NCBI RefSeq assembly: GCF_035594765.1
Contig: NC_085841.1
Location: 45,677,636 to 45,741,635 of the forward strand
From: Anolis carolinensis
Taxonomy: Eukaryota
Direction of reading: 5' to 3'
DNA: 64,000 bases
Shown here: piece after piece, positions 4,852 through 64,000 of the stretch
How the letters are laid out: each line of letters opens with the position of its first letter
Numbering within the stretch: position 1 is the stretch's first letter
Position numbers and translations under genes: made by a program
Notes under the pieces: model-generated
The model's input: only the letters and a program-made list of their open reading frames with translations
Told to the model about the DNA's origin: nothing
Databases searched by the model: none

Positions 4852-4960
4852 GAGGGAGAGGAGAAATGTCACTTGGATGCCAAGAAGCCTTTGAAATATT
4901 TAGAAGAGATCATGCCGATAGCATAACCATTGACGACAATAAACAGCTTCTTAAAGTAAG
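4852..4960 (+). CDS. KIF6: KIF6 coding exon (GRGEMSLGCQEAFEIFRRDHADSITIDDNKQLLKVR)
   Basis: ctgaaag| acceptor, |gtaaga donor, phase 1-2; peptide matches my recollection of the vertebrate KIF6 tail (MSLGCQEAFEIFKRDHADS). Confidence 0.93.
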
Positions 4961-5090
4961 GTAAGATATATAATGAGCAAAAAAGTCTCTGGGAACACAC
5001 TCTGTGGGTAGGAACCCATGTTTTTGGCTTGGATGCAGAAACTGATTAAATCTAATTTATAGATTTAAATGGCCTGAATGTGTAGACTAT

Positions 5091-5243
5091 GACCCCTTCC
5101 ACACAGCTGAATAAAATCCCACCCACATTATCTCTTTTGACTGGAATATATGGCAGTGTGGACTCAGATAACCAAGTTCAAAGCAGATATTGTGGGGTAT
5201 TCTGCCTTGATAGTCTGGGTTATGTGACTGTGTGGAAGGGCCC
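5091..5243. mobile_element. MITE with TIRs cccttccacacag / ctgtgtggaaggg
   Basis: 13-bp terminal inverted repeats; the same internal module recurs at ~51610-51737. Confidence 0.7.
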
Positions 5244-5387
5244 TTAGTTACAAGGCAAGACATAGGTACAATTAGATATATGGTAAGAACCATTATTTTA
5301 GTACAGCAACTCAGAACATTGTAGCTCCACCATGGAAAGTCTTCCACACACGTGTTAGCAAAATGGAAAATCGGCATAGCGAGAGTT

Positions 5388-5888
5388 GGCCAGGCTGTGA
5401 TGCAGCTGGTTGAGTAGCCAGCTGCAATAAATCACTCTGACCAAGAGGTGGTGAGTTCGAGGTCAGCCCGTGTCGGGGTGAGCACCCAACAATTAAAATA
5501 AAAATGCCCCCTGCTCATTGTTGACCTAAGCAACTGAAAGATAGTTGCATCTATCAAGTAGGAATTTAGGTACTGCTCTGCGGGGAGGCAAATTTAACTA
5601 ATTTACGACACCATAAAAAAACTCGTCCAGCTCCTGTTTGGAATGAGGAAGTATCCATCAAGATGCCACAATGGATGATGAAGCAGCTGCTCCCCCTGTG
5701 ACTGGAATCGAGCATAACCTCAGGAAGCTGGAAGCTGGAGAATGTTAAATTGTCTCTCTCTGTCTCTATGTTTATATGGCATTGAATGTTTGCAATTATA
5801 TGTGCACATTGTGATCCGCCCTGAGTCCCCTTCGGGGTGAGAAGGGCGGAATATAAATGCTATAAATAAATAAATAAATAAATAAATA
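5388..5888 (+). mobile_element. tRNA-derived SINE with L2-like 3' end and (TAAA)n tail
   Basis: A-box/B-box-like head (gagttcga); near-identical copies at 21625-22117 (-) and 39960-40429 (+). Confidence 0.85.
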
Positions 5889-7854: not shown

Positions 7855-9160
7855 GACTTTTGTCTCTTTAAAATTTATGTTTCAACAATAACAAAAATAT
7901 TTGAGGGAAATATTTCAACATTATATCTTCTTTTGTTTCCATTTAAATATTTCCTCCTTGTAATGTATGGGTATGTGTGTGCTTTCTTTAAAATGTAGAG
8001 CACTTATGCCTCTCTTTTGCAAAGTTTAAGCAAAAGTTTTTCAAAAGATATAATTTCTCATTCCTGGGTTGCAATATATTAATGGTGATGTCTCCAGTTT
8101 TCAAAGCATTTGAGATGAACCCAAGCAAAAAAGTCTGGAAAAAGTAAAATAATTTGAATATATCATATGAATCTAATTGCATGCAGATTATAATCTTATT
8201 ATCTTTTAGGAAACAGACCTCATTACAAATAATAGATAAATTTTTGGATAAATGCCCATGCAATAGTTCTGAATATTTAATCTACCTTGTAGATTTTGTA
8301 TCAAAACAGTCCAAGCAATTTTGTAGCTGTTGCTATTTGCAGAAAACATTAGTGAACAAAGTTTGAAACATCACACTTTTTCAAAAACTCTTCTTAGATC
8401 TACTCTGTAATTTGGAACATAGCTGCTGAACCACCACTTGTCTAGAAACTCAGTGACCCAGCATTCAAATTGCTATGTAAAGATTATATATACAACACAT
8501 TTTAAAGTTAACTTTCTTTTAAATGTATACCTTTCAAATGCCAAAATTACTATATGCAGTGTGATAACCGTTTCCCATGTCATGCTTGACACTTGATTCA
8601 CAATTACTTTTTAAATAGATTTGTATTTTCTTTGGTCCCCATCCTCTTTTTAAAAGTTGGGTGAATTTTATCATAGACCACGAGAGCAATTCATGTCTTG
8701 TAGCACTTGGAAAAATCTGCATTGGTCCTTTTTATAGATTTCCTTCTGCTATTCTGTGGTGCAGAGGCATAGTCTGCTACTCCAAACCTCAGTAGCATTC
8801 CTCAGGCACCTTATCTTCTTTCAAGATTGTATCCAAATGGCTTTCAACTTGTTCGTTTCCTTAATCATAAAATCATAGAATTGGAAAGTCACCTAAGCCA
8901 GCCTTCTGCAATAAAATTTCACTCATCAACTGACACCTCCCACGATCCTCTTGCCTGATCCAGACCAAGTATACCACAAGTAACTGCTCTGCAGAAGGTG
9001 CCTGAAGAAAGCCATCATTATTTTATGAGTGTATAGTGGACAAAACCTCATACTAAAATAAAACCCACCCTTTGAAATCTTGTCAGCTAAGTGCTATTTC
9101 TAACTCCTTAACAAACTCCAGAGAGGCAGCCATATTAACTGTGTTGCAACAATTCCAATA

Positions 9161-9450: not shown

Positions 9451-11154
9451 CTCAACGTGGCATTCTTTCCAGTATTTACATGACTATCATGTGCCCTTTC
9501 ATCTGTCTTTTCTTTTCCACAGAGTCCACTATAAACACTGCACATTGTTGATTTGTGTAAATGAGCAGTGTTCAGAAACCTTTCATTGTTCCCAATTTTT
9601 TGTGATCCCAACATAGAGCTAAAAGGAATCTTATTTGGGGTCAGGACCCACAGTTTAATAAGCAGTGGTCTAGAGCACATTTTCACAAATAAAAAAAAAT
9701 ATTTGGGATATATCTCAACTGAAGAAGATTGGAATGAATTACCTGCTGTCTGAGTTCCATGAGACCCTTTGGTGACAAGTGTACACCTTTGATCTTCCAT
9801 ATCCCCCATGCCTCCCCCATGCCTCCCCCTTCCATTTTGGCTGTGGGAAAAAAGAACTCTTCTTAAAAAGGTGTAAACATCCTTACTCCAGTCTTAACAA
9901 CCTACTCCAGTCTTTCTGAAATTCAACCGCAGAATTGACCATGTATGATGCAATGGCACTTTCACTTGCCGAAAACAATAGCTGTTATAACACATTGGTC
10001 TTCGATATGCCCAATGGAGCTGATTATAGTAAGAGAGTTCCCACACAGCACTTTGCATTGAGGAAAGACTGCAAAAGATTTAAAAAAGTTAACAGAGAAC
10101 AATATATAGTCTAATCTTGTTAATTTTCTCTCTTAATCGTGTGTTGAATAAACTTCCTTCTTTTCATGGCTTGCAAGGAATCCCTTTCAAGGTCCCCCAT
10201 CAGCCACAGAAATCAAGTATTTTTAAAAGGGAGAACAAATGTTCTCCCTTTGTCTTCAGTGTGGGAAGATTTCCATGTCCTCTGTTTGAAATGCAAGGAA
10301 ATGAGAAGTCCTTTCCCTTTCCTTGCATTTCAAATAGGGTGCATGGAAATCTCTCCGGAATAGCCCAATTATGCATGTTGAGTTCATCTGGTAAAGCAAG
10401 TAGGCATCAGGAAATAAGGGCGTGGAGACCTAAAATGCTAGCTGTGTAGAGCTTGAAAGAAAAACTGACTAATTGAAAGAAGACACCCAATGTGTGCCTC
10501 TCATTGGAAAAGTGCTATTTTCCACTTTTTTCCATTGCTAGTCTTGTTAGACAAAAATGGAACTTGCGGGTTTTTCCAGTTTCTTCTCTTAGTCCAAATC
10601 TTGCCAAATCTGATTTGGTTCCAGGTCTGCTAGCAAGGATGTTTATACATGACTGGATACTCAGTCAGAATTTCATGACAAGGATACTGTCCTAGCCACA
10701 AAAACCATAATAGAATGTGTCATCCTGCAGATATCTGTGATTTGTTGCAGAAGAGTTATTTTCTCCTTTTGTCTACCTATATCAAATTAACTCTTGATTG
10801 TGTTAACATTTTAAGATATTTAAGTAAACTGACTCAGTTATCACTGCAAACTGAAGTAATAGAGACTGGCAGGATTACTCTGCCAGCTTCCAACCATCAT
10901 GGGTTCAAATAAAAATGGAATCTGCCATCTTCTGCTGGAAATGTGTTTTTATTGGCTTTTCTTTGTGCAGCCATGAAATAACTAGATCATTTTCTTCTGC
11001 CTTGCCACAAGAATTATATTTTAGGATTTTTCTGAAAGTTTGGAGATGTAAAAATATGAAGATTAGAACCTCTTGTATCAGCAGAAAATGTATAGATTAT
11101 ATTTTAGAAATAGTTTTCCATATCTGCATTGTGTATTCCAGTGGTTTTTATATT

Positions 11155-11917
11155 CAGTGATACCTTGACATACGAGTTTAATTTGTTTTATGACCAAGCT
11201 CATTACTCAAATTGCTTATATGTCAAATCAAATTTCCCCATTGAAATTAATTGAAATGGTGTTAATCCGTTCCAGCTACCCACCCAAAAAAGCCACACCA
11301 ATTTTTATTATGTGTATTCCCCTTCAAGATCAGAGAAGATGCTACTGGAGACCACTCTACCTTGCTCCCCTCCCCCCCATCCCAGCTCTGCTTATGATTG
11401 GTGATCTGGGAGCAGCTCCAAAGGCATGTGCAGCAGAGGTTGCACGGTGGAACTGAGGTGTTGCAGCCACTGCCTGTTGTCTGTTGGTGTCTGGGGTCAG
11501 CCCAGTGGGCTGCATGTGAGCGGAAGGGGTATGTAAGCTTCCCTATCATTCACGGCCTCCTGCATGCGAGGGGGTCACACTCAGGTTTCAGGGTGTGTAA
11601 TTTCCCCTGTCAATCAAGGACTCCTGCCAATAAAATGGGCTCTTCCCAGCCAGTTGGGTTTCTTTGGGGTTTTTCTGCAGGATTTTAAAATTAGAATACG
11701 TGTTCAAGTTGTGGGGAGGACTGTATGCACACATGTTCTGGATGCCTCTTATGCCTTGTCTTTGCAAAAAGGAGGCAGCAGAGGCAACAGTGGCCTTTTA
11801 GGCATCTCTGGAGGGCTTTGTTAAGGGAGCTCGTAACTCAGATCTCAGTTCGCATTTCAAAGCCAAAAATTGATGGAGTGACAACTTGTATCATAGAAAA
11901 CTCATAAATTAGTGCTG
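11155..11917. mobile_element. Degraded Tc1/mariner (Tigger-like) non-autonomous element
   Basis: cagtgataccttgacatacgag-type left end with ctcgtaactca counterpart at right; ends approximate. Confidence 0.4.
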
Positions 11918-22190: not shown

Positions 22191-23527
22191 TAAGATTCTG
22201 GAAAAGATCATTAAGGAAGTGGTCTGCAAACACTTAGAAACAAATGCGGTCATTGCTAATAGTCAACACGGATTTACCAAAAACAAGTCATGCCAGACTA
22301 ATCTGATCTCTTTTTTCGATAGAGTTACGAGCTGGGTCGATACAGGGAATGCTGTGGATGTAGCCTACCTGGATTTCAGTAAAGCCTTCGACAAAGTCCC
22401 CCATGACCTTCTGGCAAACAAACTAGTTAAATGTGGGCTAGACAAAACTACGGTTAGGTGGATCTGTAATTGGCTAAGCGAACGAACCCAAAGGGTGCTC
22501 ACCAATGCGTCGTCTTCATCATGGAAAGAAGTGACAAGTGGAGTGCCGCAGGGTTCCGTCCTGGGCCCAGTTCTGTTCAACACCTTTATTAACGACTTAG
22601 ACGAAGGGTTAGAAGGCACGATCATCAAGTTTGCAGACGACACCAAACTGGGAGGGATAGCTAACACTCCAGAAGACAGGAGCAGAATTCAAAACGATCT
22701 TGACAGACTAGAGAGATGGGCCGAAACTAACAAAATGAAGTTCAACAGGGAAAAATGCAAGATACTTCACTTCGGCAGAAAAAATGGAAATCAAAGATAC
22801 AGAATGGGGGACGCCTGGCTTGACAGCAGTGTGTGCGAAAAAGACCTTGGAGTCCTCGTGGACAACAAGTTAAACATGAGCCTACAATGTGATGCGGCAG
22901 CTAAAAAAGCCAATGGGATTTTGGCCTGCATCAATAGGGGAATAGCGTCTAGATCCAGGGAAGTCATGCTCCCCCTCTATTCTGCCTTGGTCAGACCACA
23001 CCTGGAATACTGTGTCCAATTTTGGGCACCGCAGATGAAGGGAGATGTTGACAAGCTGGAAAGCGTCCAGAGGAGGGCGACTAAAATGATTAAGGGTCTG
23101 GAGAACAAGCCCTATGAGGAGAGGCTTAAAGAGCTGGGCATGTTTAGCCTGCAGAAGAGAAGGCTGAGAGGAGACATGATAGCCATGTACAAATACGTGA
23201 GGGGAAGTCATAGGGAGGAGGGAGCAAGCTTATTTTCTGCTGCCCTGCAGACTAGGACACGGAACAATGGCTTCAAACTACAGGAAAGGAGATTCCACCT
23301 GAACATCAGGAAGAACTTCCTCACTGTGAGGGCTGTTCGGCAGTGGAACTCTCTCCCCCAGACTGTGGTGGAGGCTCCTTCTTTGGAAGCTTTTAAGCAG
23401 AGGCTGGATGGCCATCTGTCGGGGGTGCTTTGAATGAGATTTCCTGCTTCTTAGCGGGGGTTTGGACTAGATGGCCCATGAGGTCTCTTCCAACACTACT
23501 ATTCTATGATTCTATGATTCTATGATT
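22191..23527 (+). mobile_element. 5'-truncated CR1 LINE
   Basis: Uninterrupted RT frame, 3' UTR and (TTCTATGA)n tail. Confidence 0.95.
22219..23433 (+). CDS. CR1 ORF2 C-terminal part (reverse transcriptase), stop-free but lacking the endonuclease
   Basis: [38 protein letters not shown] motifs. Confidence 0.85.
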
Positions 23528-36193: not shown

Positions 36194-37378
36194 TGTTGAG
36201 ACACAGAGGCCTTAAAGAGCCACATACACTATTTAGTCCAACAAAAAGTTTATTGCAAAAAGCTCAGAGAAATTTAACCTCAGTGTCTCTGGCCAAAACT
36301 CAAAGAATTTACCCAAACTGGGCTCCAAAAGGCAAACGGAAAATAATCTGGGTTACACAGAAGGGAAAACCGGATTAAAAAGCAGTCAAAGTAACCAGCA
36401 AACAAGCAGCGCTGTACACAAGAGTTCTAACAGACAGCGCTGCTCCCAAAGAGTTAACTGCAAGAAGGAGTTGCCAAAGACAGCCGTAGTCCAAGAGTCA
36501 TTGCTGAAGAAAGCCAAAGGATACGTCGTTTTCAAGTTGTCAAATAAAGTCGTCGACAAGTCAGTCCACAATCCAGGGAGGGAGAAAGCCACACTCACGA
36601 GAAGTCAGTCCAAGTTGAAGATTCTCAGGTAACACGAACTCCAGGCTGCAGAACCCGAACCCAAAACCCAACACAAGAACAGGCAGCGACAAATACACAC
36701 TATACGTAACCGACACTTTGCCTTCTGCAAAGATTCCCACTGCAGAGACTACTTTTAACTTACACATCATTATCTGATGATGAGCTGGCCTCCACCCCAT
36801 CATCATCTCTTACAGCTGTCCTTGTCTTCACACATGAACCCCTGTTTCCATCCCTCCAGTTCCTCCATCTCTTGTCAAGACTTAGGCTTCCCCATGATTC
36901 TGATGTATCTCCCCTTTGCCAATCCTCATGTACCAAAACCCCCACAAACGTGTCACTAGAGGTTGGGTCTCCACATATATCCCTTATCTCTTGTACCTTA
37001 GTCCAATCCATCGTGTTCTCCCCATCCTAATCACTCCCAGACCCATCATTCCCAGAGAAACCCATAAACGACTCATCATCTGTGGGAGCAGTAAGTATAT
37101 CCCGGATCTTCTTCCTCTCTCGTTCTTCATCTGATTCCTGCTCCCGAGTAACCCTCTTTGTGCCTCTATTCCCATCCACCACATCTCCTTCCTCGCTCAT
37201 TGACTCCCCGCCACTTGAAAACCCTTCGAATGTGTCTTCATCAGTAGGTGCCATAAGTATATCCCGGATCCTTTTCCTTTGCTGTTCTTTTTCTGACACC
37301 TGCTCGCGAGTAGCCCTTTTCCCCCTTCTGGTACTCATATTACTGCTTGCAACATTACTTACTGGCTCTACTACAACA
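36194..37378 (-). mobile_element. Solo Gypsy-type LTR (LTR-C, 1185 bp)
   Basis: TGT...ACA termini; 5-bp TSD GGTGG at 36189-36193 and 37379-37383; minus-strand AATAAA near 36250. Confidence 0.9.
36760..37377 (-). pseudogene. LTR-C U3-encoded frame (~205 codons, one internal TAG at 37027-37029) with three IRDI..PT..[ST]FxG repeats
   Basis: ORFs 37027..37413 and 36760..37011 are in the same frame; 54-aa repeat period; synonymous differences between repeats. Confidence 0.65.
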
Positions 37379-47893: not shown

Positions 47894-50800
47894 CAGGGCG
47901 GGCCGCATGAGACACTTAGTTAAAACTTGGGGTGAGAAAAGGATAAGAATACAACCACAGAGAACAGGGACATAAGATAAAAAAACAATCTAGAGGATAG
48001 ATGTTGGGGGAGTAACAAAAGAAGTGTGTAATAGTTACTCTCCGAAAGCACATCGGAAAAGCCAGGTTTTTAAATCTTTCCTGAAGGCTAAAAGAGTGGG
48101 GGCTTGCCTGATTTCGATGGGCAGTGAGTTCCATAAACGGGGGGCCACAGCAGAAAAGGCCCTCTCCCTTGTTCCCACAAGGCGGGTCTGGGATACAGGC
48201 AGTGGCGACAGGAGGGCCTCCCCTGATGATCGAAGAGATCGGGCAGGTTTATGGTAGGAGATACGGTCACGAAGGTAGGTGGGTCCCAAACCGTTTAGGG
48301 CTTTATAAATGATGGTCTGCACCTTGAATTGGGATCGGAAAGTGAACGGCAGCCAGTGGAGCTCCTTAAACAGGGGAGTAGATCTCTCCCTGTAACTCGC
48401 CCCCATTATTAATCTGGCAGCCGAGCGTTGGACCAGTTGTAATTTCCGAGCCGTCTTCAAGGGAAGCCCCATGTAGAGCGCATTACAGTAGTCCAGTCTA
48501 GAGGTAACTAGGGCATGGACCACCGTGGTCAAGTCAGACTTCACGAGGTATGGTCGCAGTTGGCGCACAAGTTTGAGTTGTGTGAAAGCCCTCCCGGCCA
48601 CCGCCGACACCTGACCCTCAAGCATCAACGCTGAATCCAGGAGGACCCCCAAACTGCGGACCTGTGATTTCAGGGGGAGTGCGACCCCGTCCAGCACAGG
48701 TTGCCACCCGATACCCCGATCAGACGAGCGACTGACCAGGAGAGCCTCTGTCTTGTCAGGATTGATCCTCAACTTGTTCCTCCTCATCCAGTCCGCCACA
48801 GCGGCCAGGCACTGGTTCAGCATCCGAGGGGCTTCCTTGGATTCAGATGGAAACGAGTAGTGGATTTGCGTGTCATCCACGTAGAGATGGCAATGCCCTC
48901 CAAAACTCCGGATGACCTCTCCCAGCGGTTTCATGTAGATGTTAAATAGCATGGGGGATAAGATAGACCCTTGCAGGACCCCACAGGTCAATGGCCAGGG
49001 GTCCGAGCAGGTATCCCCCAGCTTCACCATCTGGGAACGGCCCTCCAGGAAGGACTGGAGCCACTGCAGAACCGTGCCACCGAGCCCCATCCCAGAGAGC
49101 TTCCCCAGAAGGATACCATGGTTGATGGTATCGAAAGCCGCTGAGCTTAACCAGCCAAGAAGGACAAGGATCCAGAGTGCAAGTGGTCGCCCTCACAGAC
49201 CCAAGAATCCCCTCCATGTCATCAGGAAGGACAAGCCGGAAAGAATCCCATAAGATCGAACAGACAGGTGCCTCGGTTACCTCCGCTGGAACCACAGTTA
49301 AGCTGGAGTCCAACTCACGACGTATCTGAGCAACTTTGCCTGCAAAATGATGTGCGAAATCGCTGCACCGAGTTGCCAAGTCATCAGGAAGCCCCTGGGT
49401 CTCAGGGGGCCACAGGAGCTCCCCAACAACTCGGAACAACTCCGATGGCCTGTTGGCTGCAGACGCTATGCGGGCAGTCGTGAAAGCTTTCCTGGCTGCT
49501 CGCAGAGCCACGGAGTAAGCCTTAATAGCGGTTTTAGCCCATGCTTGGTCAGACACATCCTGAGATTTCCTCCAGATGCACTCTAGTCGCCTCCTCGCAC
49601 GCTTCATCACAGCCAGCTCCTCAGTGAACCAAGGAGTCGACGTGACTCTACGCAGCGAAAGGGGACGTTCGGGAGCGATCGTGTCAAGTGCCCTTCCCAA
49701 CTCGCTGTTATAACGATCAGCCAGGACATCAACAGGATCGCCAGTCTCCAGAACAGGAAGATCCCCAAGAGACCTCAGAAGTCCATCCGGATCCATCAGC
49801 CTCCTGGGGCGAACCATCTTAATGGGTCCACCACCCCTGCGGAGGTTAGAAGCCACGGCGAAACTTAAACAGATCAGATGATGGTCAGACCATGACAATG
49901 GAAGAATACTTTGCTCTTCCACTCTGACTGTCCCACCGTCCACAATAAAAACCAGGTCCAACGTGTGTCCCGCCTGATGTGTGGGCCCAGATATAACTTG
50001 AGTCAGCCCTATGGTCGTCATGGCAACCATGAAATCCTGAGCTGCACCTGTCAAAGTGGTCTCGGCATGAATGTTAAAGTCCCCCAAAACTATGTGTTGT
50101 TGGGAGACCAGGGCCGAATTGGAGACCACTTCTGCTAGCTCGGACAGAGAGACTGCTGGGTCGCAGGGTGGACGGTACACCAGCAGAATCCCCAAGCTGT
50201 CTCGGGCTCCCACCTTCAGGAAGACACACTCAAACCTCGAAGACTGCGGAACGGCACATCTGATCAGGGCGATGGACTGCCAAAAGATCACCGCGACTCC
50301 TCCTCCCCGCCCCCCAGCCCTGGCCTGCTGATGCACCCCGAAACCTGGTGGACACAGCTGGGTGAGATTCACACCACCCTGCTCGTCCAACCACGTCTCG
50401 GTGATGCATGCCAGATCCGCCCCCTCATCCAGGATCAAATCCTGGATAACAGCTGTTTTACCGTTGACGGATCTGGCGTTCAAAAGCAGGACCTTAAGGC
50501 TGGGAGGTCTGTCCTGAAGACTACCACACCTATTCCTCTCCAGGGTCACAAAAACTCTGTTGCGCTTCTCCCTGGGTCGAAAGTGACCGTTCTTCCTTCT
50601 CCCCCAAACCACCTCAATGAGACCCTGCCCGTGGAAACCCTCTTCCCCCTGGAGAGTTGACTGATTGAGGTTGCCCTTTAAAGGGGATAGTCAGCTGTCC
50701 TGAGATAGGAAATCACCAGCAATACTTGATTGTTTAAAGGAGGAGCCTATCTCCGCTGGTGTAAGAGGAAAGGAGTCATCTAACAGATCATCATCTAGCG

Positions 50801-59829: not shown

Positions 59830-60409
59830 ATCTAGAGACTATTTCACCTATTTCCTCCATGGCTAGAGAAAACATCTTAAGTTCTATTAGGGTGTATCAA
59901 CTATACATATTTCCCCCAAAGAAAGCATTTCCATGTAAAGAGATGATGAAAACTGGATATTAAAGAAAGGAAATGAAAGAAAAAAAAAACCAGTTTGGAT
60001 CCTAAAATAAGATATGGAAAAACTTCTCCTTTACAGGATGGGGGAAAGGCTGATGGGAAAGGGAAGAAAATTTGGAGGAGGTAAATAGTGAGTGCAAATG
60101 TGGGAGTTGAGCCACACCTGTTGAGTTTCCTTCTGCATTAATTATGAATTAAAAAGGGAAGGGTACATATTACTAGGTAATTCCAAGTCTTCCTAAAGCT
60201 ACAGTGGATGAATAACAAGAGAGCTGCCTATAGTCCTAAAAATACCTTTGATTGCTTTTGTAGTAGATTTTCTGTTAATTTATTGCTAGTAACTAAAACA
60301 TTTTACAGTGATTAGAATTAGAATAGCTTTATTGTCATTGTGCTATTGCACAACAAAATTAAATGCCTTCCCCAGTACACATCAGTACACATCAGAAAAC
60401 AACACACCC

Positions 60410-60831
60410 ATCCCTGGGCTTAAGGTCCTGCTGATAAACACTAGGTCTGTGAATGGTAAAACAACTGCCATTCAGGATTTAATCCTGGATGAGGGAGCAG
60501 ACCTAGCATGCATCACCGAGACCTGGCTGGATGAGCTGGGGGGGGGGGGGGTAAACCTCACCCAGCTCTGTCCTCCAGGCTTTAGGGTGCATCAGCAAGC
60601 CAGACCCAGGGGGCAGGAAGGTGGTGTTGCGGTGGTCTATTGGGAGTCCATTGCCCTGATCAGGTGCCCTGCTCCTCAATTCTCTGGGTTCGATTGTGTC
60701 CAGCTGAAAGTGGGCAACCAGGACAGTTTGGGGCTTCTGCTTGTGTACCGACCACCCCGCAACACAGCAGTCTCCCTGCCAGAGCTTGCGGGGGTGGTCT
60801 CTGACCTGGCGTTGGGGTCTAACCAGCTAAT
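60410..60831 (+). mobile_element. L2 ORF2 N-terminal (APE) fragment interrupted by Gypsy insertion
   Basis: LKVLLINTRSVNGKT.AIQDLILDEGADLACITETWLDE, homologous to 48942..50612; cut just before GDFN. Confidence 0.9.
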
Positions 60832-61709
60832 TGTGATGTCTCATGGGCCATGTAGTCCCGTTCCTAGTACTATTGTGGCAGACGAAGAGGGAAACTTGGG
60901 TTTCCCACCGGTCCAGCCAGAATCGGAGGCCCCGCACCTGCAAGATGTTTGCCCTCAAGAAGTCAGCCAAACAAGCCTTGAGCAGAATTCTCCCCCGTTC
61001 TCTCGCAAAGATAATTATAATCGAGATAGAGGCGCTAGGGAGGCGAAGCGCCGAAGCGCCAGAATCGCTGCCAGACAATTAGCTGATTAAGCCTGTTTCC
61101 CTTGGGAAATCTTAAGGAGTCATGCATCTGGACACAGTATGGGTTTCACTTCTTGTTCCCCAGGGAAAGTGTTCCTTGGCGGGAAAACAAGATCCTATAT
61201 AGGTGTTTACCCGCAAGGAGATCCTTGCGGAGTCAATTCGTCAGCTTCAGGAGTAAGATCGTGTGTGGACTACGCTACTCCAGTTCCTTGTTTCCAGGAC
61301 CTTGCCACGGACCTTGTTCTAGTTCCAAACCTGCCTTGTTCCTCGGACCTCGCCACGGACCCTGTTCTTGCTTCTTGCCTCTTGTTGCCTCGTATCAAGT
61401 CTTGTTTGCCAAGAATCTAGTTTGTTTTCCAGCCTTGTTGTCAAGCTCCATTGGACTAAAGGACCCTGTCATTTCCCCACACTTGCTCGGCAAGTGTATG
61501 TTTCGGTTATTGGATTATAACTTTGGACTCTAATATCTCATATTGGACATTGATTTCCTGGACTATATTTGACCTTTCCTGAAAGGTCTACTTCTGAACT
61601 ATATTCTTCACTTGTTTTTATTGACTTTATATATTCCTTTAATAAAGATATTAGATAGATTCTGGTCTCTGCGCATGGTTATTGGTGCTCTGCGGCCTGG
61701 GTCTTGACA
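60832..61709 (+). mobile_element. 5' LTR of Gypsy element (LTR-D, 878 bp)
   Basis: TGT...ACA termini, TATATA 61196-61201, AATAAA 61641, followed by PBS and gag. Confidence 0.92.
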
Positions 61710-61711
61710 GT

Positions 61712-61721
61712 TTGACTCCGC
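61712..61721 (+). promoter_or_regulatory. Self-priming primer-binding site (Tf1/sushi type)
   Basis: TTGACTCCGC is the exact reverse complement of GCGGAGTCAA at 61227-61236, ~30 nt after the TATA box. Confidence 0.8.
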
Positions 61722-61752: not shown

Positions 61753-62739
61753 ATGTCTACAGGAACCGGGGCGGAAGCCCAACCACTCAGCTACACCATT
61801 TCCAAGGATGAATTAGACAGAATCCGGGATACACTCCATACGCAGGAGGGAGAAATACGGGGCTTGAAGGAACGAGGTATCCGGCTCCCTGCCCTGGCGC
61901 TTCCAACCAAGTTTTCTGGAGAAGCCTCCAAGGTTCATGTTGTCCGTCGCCAATGCCAGGCGTACATAGAAGCCCGTCAAGCCGAGTTTCCCCAAGAAGA
62001 AATCAAGGTGGCGTGGATTTACAGTCTCCTAGAAGGGCCAGCGGGCAATTGGGCAACGGCGCTATTTGATGCGGGCTCCATGCACCTAAGTTCCGCGCAA
62101 AACTTCCTGAATCACCTTAAGGCGACATGGGGGATCGAGGACAATGTGGAGGCGGCTGGCCATAAACTCCGGCGCCTTTTCCAAGGGGACAGGCCGTTGT
62201 CCCAGTACATAGCCGAGTTCCGGGTGCTGGCCCAAAACACCGGTTGGAACGATATAGCCCTCAGAGGACAGTTTCGCAAGGGTCTCAACTTCGAGATGCA
62301 GGAAGAAATCTCCAAGGTGGAACCTCCAAACTCTCTTGAGAGACTTATCGATCAATGTTTACGAGCCGAAGTCCTGCTTGCCAACAAAAAACAGTGGCTC
62401 CGAGGCCAGAGTGGAAGAGCAGGAGTGAAACCTCCCGCTTCCGCCAGTATTCAGCCACGTCCAGTGTGGAGACCCCCACCACCAGCCCCATACCCCAGAG
62501 GAAGCGAGGAGGAGCCGATGCAGTTGGGCAATGTGCGTCCCAGATTAGATGTTGCCGAGAAGGCCCGCCGCCAACGTTTAAACCTCTGTTGGACCTGCAG
62601 GAACGGGGGCCACTTCGCCAGAGAATGTCCAGCCAAGAGAAAGCCCGCCGCTCGCTTGGCGGCGGCGTCCTCCGCGGAGACGGAGACGGCCGAGGCGGCT
62701 GGCGCAAAGCCGGCGGGGGAAGCCAGCGACCGGGCGTAG
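61753..62739 (+). CDS. Ty3/Gypsy (sushi-like) Gag
   Basis: Intact 328-aa ORF; PTKFSG, QG.RPL..Y..EF, EPMQLG, CCHC knuckle CWTCRNGGHFAREC. Confidence 0.93.
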   Translation: MSTGTGAEAQPLSYTISKDELDRIRDTLHTQEGEIRGLKERGIRLPALALPTKFSGEASKVHVVRRQCQAYIEARQAEFPQEEIKVAWIYSLLEGPAGNWATALFDAGSMHLSSAQNFLNHLKATWGIEDNVEAAGHKLRRLFQGDRPLSQYIAEFRVLAQNTGWNDIALRGQFRKGLNFEMQEEISKVEPPNSLERLIDQCLRAEVLLANKKQWLRGQSGRAGVKPPASASIQPRPVWRPPPPAPYPRGSEEEPMQLGNVRPRLDVAEKARRQRLNLCWTCRNGGHFARECPAKRKPAARLAAASSAETETAEAAGAKPAGEASDRA

Positions 62740-63890
62740 AGAGGCTCGCCAACCCGGTCAAGAACCCCACTCAAGAGCCGCAAACCGGGGTCCTATTTCT
62801 CCTAGTGGTCACGTTGTGGTCAGCGAAAAAGGGACCCGTCATGATCCATGCCATGATAGACTCAGGAGCAACAAACAATTTCATCGATAGAGAGTATGCC
62901 GACTCTCTGGGATTACAATATCACGATTTCAAGAACGCCCGGGTGGTGCAGGCTATCGATGGCCGTCCCCTAAAGATGGGTCCAGTAAGTCAATGGACTG
63001 AACCCACCAGGATGTGGATAAGAGAACACATGGAAGCAATTTCCTTCTTTGTTACCGAGGTGCCCCACTTCCCTGTGATTTTGGGAATTCCATGGCTGAC
63101 GCTCCACGACCCAAACATCTCCTGGACCAACAGAGAACTACAGTTTGCTTCAAAATATTGCCAAAACCATTGTCTAGTAGCCAAGGTCTGCCATGCCACA
63201 GACGCTGAGCCCATCATCACCTTACCCAAGAAATATTCAGACTTTTGGGATGTATTCACTGAAAAGGAAGCCGAGAAACTACCCCCACATAGACCTTATG
63301 ACTGTGCCATTGACTTGGTGGAGGGGGCCCCGATCCCGCGAGGACACCTCTACTCCCTGACTGAACCAGAGCAAGAAGCTCTCAGGGAGTTCATAGAGTC
63401 AAATCTTCGCAAGGGATTCATCAGACCCTCTCAATCCCCAGCTGCCTCCCCGGTGATGTTTGTGAAAAAGAAGTCAGGGGACCTACGCTTGGTTGTGGAC
63501 TATAGAGCATTGAACAATACCACGAAGCGGAACCGCTACCCGCTGCCTTTGATCTCGGACCTATTAGACCGGCTTCGAGGGGCCAAGGTTTACACCAAGC
63601 TGGATCTCCGGGGGGCTTACAATCTAGTTCGCATCAGAGAAGGGGACGAATGGAAAACCGCCTTCCAGACCAAATTCGGATTATTCGAGTCCCTAGTCAT
63701 GAATTTCGGTTTATCCGGAGCTCCCGCAACGTTCCAGCATTTTGTCAACGATATCTTCCAGGATTATCTAGATCGGTTCTTGATCATATACTTGGACGAT
63801 TTTTTGATGTTTTCTAGATCACAATCGGAGCACGAAAAACATGTCAGAATGGTGCTACAACGGTTGCGGGATCATGGACTATATGCCAAG
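62700..63890 (+). CDS. Gypsy Pol (protease + RT N-terminal part) in -1 frame, interrupted at 63890
   Basis: AMIDSGATNNFID protease; LPPHRPYDC, LRLVVDYRALN, DEWKTAF, YLDD (63789-63800); same frame at all points checked. Confidence 0.92.
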
Positions 63891-64000
63891 TGTCACGACC
63901 CAGGCTGCAGAGCACCAATAACCATACACAGAGGCCAGAATCTATCTAATATCTTTATTAAGGAAATATATAAAGTCAATAATAATAAGTGTAGAATGTT
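63891..64000 (-). mobile_element. 3' end of a related LTR inserted antisense into pol (runs off the window)
   Basis: Reverse complement closely matches 61600-61709 with several substitutions; starts with TGT right after ...HGLYAK. Confidence 0.9.

Follow-up and report, generated by a model that had tools for sequence, protein, structure and literature searches.

Does the long terminal repeat (LTR) of a retrotransposon of Anolis carolinensis encode the end of the integrase, and if so, on what could this end act? The question arises from a stretch of 64,000 nucleotides of the anole genome (contig NC_085841.1, positions 45,677,636 to 45,741,635), hereafter called the window, which contains the 5' LTR, designated LTR-D, of a Ty3/gypsy chromovirus (Metaviridae). 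This assignment is based on gag and the protease-reverse transcriptase (PR-RT) part in the window and on the integrase domains of a full-length relative, L001. The U3 region of LTR-D holds an open frame that ends shortly after the residues RRSARIAA, a motif resembling the nucleosome-binding core of HMGN proteins. The initial annotation had recorded this 85-codon frame, an acidic DEEGNLGF block, the RRSARIAA motif and a TATA box about 100 nt further on, and all of these were found in place (Table 1), the last at a distance of 106 nt.

The LTR frame is the end of integrase

The frame at 60833-61090 is a U3-encoded C-terminal extension of the Gag-Pol polyprotein of this Anolis chromovirus. The initial annotation had taken it for the far C-terminus of integrase, and the structure of L001, an A. 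carolinensis locus (assembly GCA_035594765.1), agrees with this. L001 has two LTRs (4938-5843 and 10336-11241) that are about 98% alike, it is flanked by a CTTAA target duplication, and its polypurine tract GAGGGGGGGGATAG adjoins the LTR start TGTGATG. Its open reading frame (ORF) at 9767-10588 joins, with no internal stop, SH3_Tf2-1 and Chromo to the polypurine tract and to a stretch of 83 codons from the LTR, and it terminates in RRSARIAAKQETD (RRSARIAAK). Elsewhere this element is broken: gag is frameshifted, the reading frame also shifts between RNase H and integrase, and a single stop interrupts the integrase region near 9755; the Pfam domains found in it are RVT_1, RT_RNaseH, Integrase_H2C2, rve and SH3_Tf2-1.

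The same junction was seen in the subfamily of LTR-D itself. In P0012 (A0A803TWT2, 316 aa), SH3_Tf2-1 and Chromo are followed by a tail that is 87% identical to that of LTR-D and terminates in RRSARIAAKQLAD, and in P0004 the chromodomain is followed directly by GDS joined to VMSHGPCSPVPS. These two are protein models, possibly spliced; contiguity at the DNA level was checked in L001, L003 and L005. L003 is a metagenome contig of 4960 bp with overlapping ends, and inside its ORF the polypurine tract is followed by the LTR start TGTCACGAC, which is the LTR end GTCGTGACA inverted. L005, from Rhineura floridana, contains an unspliced gene (8001-8843) of which the tail begins at the LTR start, 8578-8579. 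The tail of L002 was judged to be LTR-encoded by its polypurine tract and LTR-start sequence. In L001, L002, L003 and L005, pol continues past the polypurine tract and has its stop within the 3' LTR. The first LTR base is the third codon position in L001, L003 and L005, the same phase as in the window, and the tail is open from LTR base 2 in the related copies. The copy in the window is itself silent and untranslated, because it occupies U3 of the 5' LTR, with the TATA box and the transcription start lying downstream.

The domain that precedes the tail was identified as Chromo by Pfam in L001 (9767-10585), P0012, P0004 and P0010. By inspection, it is a type I chromodomain with the cage residues F, W and F/Y (EEEF...DWVG[FY]). 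It was thus seen in relatives and in LTR-D's subfamily (P0012), the window element being cut before integrase.

A HMMER search of the whole library with the 85-residue tail gave three true relatives, all of which were A. carolinensis gene models; the other four matches, bacterial Ig-repeat or fn2 proteins, were discarded as low-complexity matching. A word search with the P0002 tail returned the query alone. In the anole gene models P0001, P0002 and P0009, the protein ends in, or is spliced from, the LTR frame or the chromodomain exon next to it; one such model is XP_062826559.1, isoform X2 of the 174-kb gene LOC107983085. Models of this kind are chimeras of the annotation or else exonised LTRs.

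The tail is under purifying selection

We compared the tails of LTR-D and L001 codon by codon; the DNA identity of the LTRs was 40-75%. In the true frame, the proportion of synonymous differences (pS) was 0.74 and that of replacement differences (pN) was 0.29, giving a pN/pS value of 0.39 (Fisher p = 2.6e-9). When the frame was shifted by 1, these values were 0.37, 0.39 and 1.06, and when it was shifted by 2, they were 0.30, 0.42 and 1.38, respectively. The alignment was protein-guided in the true frame, which biases it slightly towards that frame, and an alignment at the nucleotide level was essentially the same. For comparison, gag of the same two elements gave a pS of 0.58, a pN of 0.15 and a pN/pS of 0.26, and PR-RT gave 0.50, 0.05 and 0.10. 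The eight codons of the motif showed six synonymous changes and zero replacements. The tail is under purifying selection. Synonymous divergence was lowest in its first 12 codons (pS 0.35, against 0.6-1.0 elsewhere in the tail), a low value that agrees with a further constraint on the DNA of the LTR end.

The probability that a stretch of 85 codons stays open by chance is about 0.02. Within the tail, the VMSHGPCSPVPS block is kept in all anole copies, the acidic block reads DE[ED][EG]N[LMF]GF in all of them, and RRSARIAA is identical at eight of eight positions in P0012, P0002, L001 and P0127. The acidic block was also considered as a LEDGF/TND-binding motif, for which the published consensus is reportedly FxGF; this assignment was not adopted, since every anole tail of the RRSAR type has Asn where the first Phe should stand (N[LMF]GF).

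The RRSxR[LI] motif recurs in other chromoviral integrases

The initial annotation had pointed to conservation of RRSxR across copies of the family as a check of its proposal. The motif is kept in the anole copies and extends to other lineages. Recurrence was surveyed in 120 listed of the 685 relatives of the L001 integrase C-terminus, and among the relatives listed three further proteins end in a motif of the RRSxR[LI] type. P0127, encoded by L002, has the terminal residues RRSARIAARV in an LTR-encoded tail of only 17 residues. P0066, encoded by L003, carries RRSQRLAT in its LTR-encoded tail, which terminates in RRSQRLATRDSL. P0072, a chromoviral integrase of which the LTR boundary is unplaced, has RRSLRIQR and terminates in RRSLRIQRRMNA. 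Among named relatives, P0127 and P0066 stand closest to frog chromoviruses; for L002-L004, similarity was the basis on which the source organisms were inferred.

Counted over 74 post-chromodomain tails, RRS.R[LI] occurred in 4, against 0.044 expected from residue shuffling, and none of 5000 shuffles reached even two. In all four tails, the motif lies at most 25 residues from the C-terminus. The codons used for its Arg and Ser residues differ among the four DNA copies, LTR-D, L001, L002 and L003. In the window taken alone, the occurrence of RRS.R[LI] is within chance, because shuffling gives an expectation of 0.57 per 64 kb in six frames. The motif exceeds chance because of its conservation, that is, the open frame in the same phase in relatives, the selection at the codon level and the recurrence among the tails.

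The motif matches known binders of the nucleosome acidic patch

The core of HMGN proteins is RRSARLSA. Cryo-electron microscopy (cryo-EM) places residues 22-26 (RRSAR) of HMGN2 on the acidic patch of H2A-H2B, with R23 and R26 as the main contacts, and tardigrade Dsup, with RRSSRLTS, binds the nucleosome in the same manner (PMC12487698). In yeast Dot5, which has RRSARIAT, R6, R7 and R10 are required for nucleosome binding, and mutations of the acidic patch abolish this binding (PMC13347269). We defined the HMGN-like acidic-patch class from these two studies by Arg at positions 1, 2 and 5, Ser at 3 and Leu or Ile at 6. These residues are present as RRSARI in LTR-D, P0012, P0002, L001 and P0127, as RRSQRL in P0066 and as RRSLRI in P0072.

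RRSAR of the anole tail is identical to that of HMGN and Dot5, and the whole motif agrees with Dot5 at seven of eight positions and with the HMGN core at six of eight. All four residues, three Arg and one Ser, by which HMGN-type motifs contact H2A/H2B in cryo-EM structures (PMC12487698, PMC13347269) are present. In contrast to HMGN, the anole motif stands at the extreme C-terminus of an enzyme, lacks a Lys/Pro-rich flank and shows no homology beyond the motif. We infer nucleosome binding from one line of evidence, the identity of the motif with those of HMGN2, Dsup and Dot5. An AlphaFold2 model of P0012 showed confident folds for SH3 and the chromodomain and predicted a disordered tail, with pLDDT values of 40-50 over residues 221-292. 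AlphaFold 3 is reported to model the HMGN2-nucleosome complex poorly (PMC12487698). The ESM Atlas gave no usable neighbour of the tail.

Other LTRs of the window and tails of sister lineages

The initial annotation had noted that a second LTR of the window, LTR-B (1843-2445, + strand), shares an acidic DEEGDSGF block, and we located this block at 1873-1896. LTR-B starts in the same phase as LTR-D (T, followed by GTT GTG ACT...), and the two tails are distantly alike, with a local score of 53 against 27.8 +/- 5.2 in shuffles. The further suggestion, that the repeated RMSERA (2035-2052) and LMSERA (2065-2082) of LTR-B correspond to RRSAR, did not hold, since LTR-B has Met for the second Arg, Glu at position 4 and Ala at position 6. 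A hexamer RRSERL was seen at 2169-2186, about 100 nt past the RMSERA repeats and in a different frame; it could be a frameshifted remnant or a product of chance, given the number of such hexamers expected per window.

A third LTR, LTR-C (36760-37377, - strand), encodes a tail of another kind, in which two acidic FxGF repeats (DEDTFEGF and DDESFMGF) come after helices of the RKRIRDIL type. P0018 of Podarcis has EEEEFIGF in its post-chromodomain tail. The LTR-encoded tail of Rhineura (L005, 8579-8843) ends in KRGRPVSLRPKR, which is AT-hook-like, and catfish (Hemibagrus) copies and P0046 carry RGRGRPPRRRGPR or RPRGRPRRP directly after the chromodomain. Proteins of sister chromoviruses with other basic motifs in this place are P0035, P0044, P0046, P0053, P0056 and P0070.

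Proposed mechanism and alternative explanations

We propose the following mechanism. As the ORF architecture shows, pol on the genomic RNA passes the chromodomain without a stop, runs through the polypurine tract, read as a Gly-rich linker, and continues for about 250 nt into U3 of the 3' LTR; reverse transcription then copies U3 into the 5' LTR, giving the copy at 60833-61090. The resulting integrase has a tail that is predicted to be mostly disordered and carries short conserved blocks, the last of which, RRSARIAA, stands 2-5 residues from the C-terminus. Through its three arginines and its serine, this block may dock on the acidic patch of H2A-H2B, like RRSAR of HMGN2. The type I chromodomain reads the H3 tail; with it, the motif would provide a two-point hold of the intasome on the nucleosome, and such a hold may tether or bias integration. 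Whether RRSARIAA does dock on the acidic patch and so holds the intasome seems to us an evenly balanced matter.

Several results weigh against such docking. In Pfam, six tails gave neither HMG14_17 nor any other match at E values up to 10, that is, the resemblance consists of one short motif, and phmmer with the tails matched no chain of the PDB at E values up to 10. Homology to the HMGN family was rejected on the lack of a Pfam, PDB or Atlas match, the likeness being at the level of the motif alone. AlphaFold2 predicted the last 23 residues of P0012 to be helical (pLDDT 57-82, with a shallow alignment there), whereas HMGN2 and Dsup bind in an extended form. Close relatives do without RRSAR: the Rhineura tail terminates in KRGRPVSLRPKR, that of Podarcis is acidic and of the FxGF type, and LTR-B shows RMSERA instead. 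In P0001 the motif has decayed to RRSLSIAA. In addition, the basic cluster of the tail could instead be a nuclear localisation signal (NLS).

This last explanation, in which the basic C-terminus would be an NLS of integrase or of the pre-integration complex and not a nucleosome tether, is the main rival, and we judge it unlikely. Ty1 integrase has an established C-terminal NLS. In LTR-D, RK, 12 residues and KRRSA make up a classical bipartite pattern, and P0127 and P0066 carry RRK 11-14 residues upstream of the motif; however, the upstream basic pair is not conserved, P0002 having SHHD in its place and L001 a weak counterpart. Moreover, the exact RRSxR[LI] is kept across the turnover of synonymous codons, Arg is never replaced by Lys, and Ser and the hydrophobic residue are fixed. 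An NLS needs none of this, and classical NLSs favour Lys. The roles of NLS and tether are compatible, and they do not exclude each other. We regard another role at the protein level as quite unlikely: the tail end might be recognised by a basophilic kinase or by 14-3-3, touch viral DNA or RNA, or make an intramolecular contact within the intasome. Purifying selection says that the peptide matters but not why, the predicted structure is an amphipathic helix and not an extended peptide, and KRRS resembles a PKA-type site, although in LTR-D only. On the other hand, the context of the kinase site at -3/-2 varies between copies, and three proteins shown by experiment to bind the acidic patch share five to seven of the eight motif positions with the tail.

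There are two further explanations: conservation of the DNA for a U3 enhancer or for the LTR terminus, with the open frame as a by-product, and chance resemblance, that is, a decaying read-through without function that happens to hold RRSAR. Both are disfavoured by the codon data, and we consider each of them highly improbable. Constraint on the DNA would agree with the low pS of the first 12 codons on the LTR end and with the place of the tail region in U3, about 100 nt from the TATA box. Over the whole tail, however, synonymous sites are near saturation while replacements are few, an asymmetry that the shifted frames lack. In addition, the four DNA copies use different codons for the Arg and Ser of the motif, and wherever a copy has an integrase, the frame is the continuation of pol. 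As for chance, the motif in the window alone is within expectation, and the search of the whole library returned the anole tail in A. carolinensis models only; against this stand the p value of the codon comparison and the four tails found where 0.044 were expected, always with the motif near the C-terminus.

The wider proposal goes beyond docking. In it, vertebrate chromoviruses would combine a U3-encoded mimic of the HMGN motif with the chromodomain into a bivalent recognition of the nucleosome, by the H3 tail methylated at lysine 9 (H3K9me) and by the acidic patch, and this would tether the intasome and shape the choice of insertion sites. The motif would be the first acidic-patch arginine anchor on any integrase, and it would be one of several interchangeable LTR-encoded chromatin-reader motifs, beside the AT-hook-like and FxGF tails of sister lineages. 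We put this forward tentatively, with somewhat less than even confidence.

The element in the window and its borders

The features of the element are listed in Table 1. The termini of LTR-D align with both LTRs of L001 (TGTGATG...GTGTGACA, 906 bp). The sequence GCGGAGTCAA (10 nt) at the probable start of R is complementary to TTGACTCCGC beyond the LTR, where there is no tRNA-type TGG primer-binding site. L001 shows a compensatory change, with GCGGAGACAA in its 3' LTR opposite TTGTCTCCGC (5846-5855). Judging from these pairings, priming in both elements looks like self-priming of the Tf1 type.

Table 1. Positions of LTR-D, its element and adjoining features in the window
Feature	Position	Strand	Remarks
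Non-LTR retrotransposon endonuclease fragment, insertion target of LTR-D	60308..60831	+	Pfam Exo_endo_phos, weak assignment
5' LTR, LTR-D	60832..61709	+	878 bp, TGTGATG...CTTGACA; element is a Ty3/gypsy chromovirus of Anolis
U3 of LTR-D	~60832-61226	+	R begins near 61227
U3 copy of the last 85 codons of Pol (integrase C-terminal tail) and TAA	60833..61090	+	Opens at LTR base 2
LTR terminus read as VMSHGPCSPVPS	60833..60868	+	Start of integrase tail and probable cis-acting LTR end
Acidic DEEGNLGF block	60881..60904	+	
SPPF block	60989..61000	+	Invariant in six full-length anole tails
RRSARIAA, HMGN-like motif	61049..61072	+	Five residues before stop
TATA box of LTR promoter (TATATA)	61196..61201	+	LTR position 365; 106 nt past stop codon of tail
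GCGGAGTCAA, probable 5' end of R	61227..61236	+	31 nt past TATA box
AATAAA polyadenylation signal within LTR-D	61641..61646	+	
TTGACTCCGC, putative primer-binding region, self-priming (Tf1-like) type	61712..61721	+	Directly past LTR
gag ORF, 328 aa	61753..62739	+	Pfam Retrotrans_gag, DUF4939, zf-CCHC
pol frame (protease and reverse transcriptase)	62601..63891	+	-1 relative to gag; broken off at 63888-63891
LTR end of a related element, inverted, inserted in reverse-transcriptase region	63888..64000	-	blastn

The PR-RT part of the element is 90% identical to that of L001 at the protein level. Since pol is interrupted at 63888-63891, neither the integrase nor the 3' LTR of the LTR-D element lies inside the window. 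The interrupting sequence at 63888-63973 is 85% identical to L001 11244-11156 (blastn), and from this alignment the inverted LTR is taken to be a nested insertion, of which the tail-coding start would fall past the window end. Neither blastn of LTR-D in the rest of the window nor tblastn with the tails as queries, run on the window and on L001, gave further copies.

Upstream, the match of 60308-60831 to Exo_endo_phos (E = 6.5e-4) scored 20 bits, under the family cut-off of 24.5 bits. The tail frame is continuous with an ORF from 60308; a functional continuity was rejected, and the fusion is accidental, the LTR having inserted into a non-LTR endonuclease fragment. P0001 represents another LTR of the LTR-D family inserted in a non-LTR element, as in the window. 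Non-LTR retrotransposon ORFs with Exo_endo_phos and RVT_1 were also seen at 48035-50612 (- strand) and 22219-23433 (+ strand).

Comparison with known systems

An LTR-encoded targeting tail of integrase is already known from the CRM elements, centromeric chromoviruses of plants. In CRM group A, too, the polyprotein frame continues beyond the polypurine tract into the 3' LTR, where a putative domain for integrase targeting is encoded, and the LTR termini TGATG...CATCA are similar to those of the anole element (Neumann et al. 2011, PMC3059260). The hosts of CRM are plants, whereas those of the present elements are vertebrates. Compared by architecture, the two also differ in that the LTR-encoded CR motif of CRM replaces the chromodomain, while the anole element retains its type I chromodomain and adds a tail, predicted to be mostly disordered, with the HMGN-like motif.

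The Tf1/sushi-group chromoviruses of fungi and vertebrates share with the anole element the order Gag-PR-RT-RH-IN, SH3_Tf2-1, the integrase chromodomain and apparent self-priming. To our knowledge, Tf1 integrase ends with its chromodomain, and an LTR-encoded extension lies outside the usual description of this family.

The tethers of retroviruses and retrotransposons, namely Gag of prototype foamy virus (PFV), LANA, p12 and integrase of murine leukaemia virus (MLV), Ty5 integrase and the chromodomains that bind H3K9me, are likewise short motifs on a Gag or integrase product that hold the complex on chromatin. The targeting domain of Ty5 integrase, in its C-terminus, binds Sir4. The chromatin-binding sequence of PFV Gag and LANA of Kaposi's sarcoma-associated herpesvirus (KSHV) place an arginine anchor on the acidic patch (PMC9040877). 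The tail of MLV integrase binds BET proteins by a motif in the integrase C-terminus (PMC4027182), and MLV p12 is a chromatin tether (PMC6021111). In contrast to these known Gag and integrase tethers, the anole motif is encoded by U3 and paired with a chromodomain. Our literature searches found no report of a retroviral or retrotransposon integrase with an HMGN-type acidic-patch motif.

Significance

In retroviruses and LTR retrotransposons, the choice of integration sites is made largely through short tethering motifs on integrase or Gag, which engage LEDGF, BET proteins, Sir4, TFIIIB or, in chromodomains and the foamy-virus Gag anchor, chromatin itself. If our proposal is correct, this set would gain a direct tether to the nucleosome surface, in the form of a conserved HMGN-type motif of a chromoviral integrase, and the HMGN-like motifs outside HMGN proteins, known from Dsup and Dot5, would extend to a mobile element. 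In these elements U3, which is usually taken as promoter DNA, is under protein-coding constraint. A coding U3 bears on the annotation of LTRs, on the dating of insertions by LTR divergence and on gene models, several predicted proteins of A. carolinensis ending in the LTR frame.
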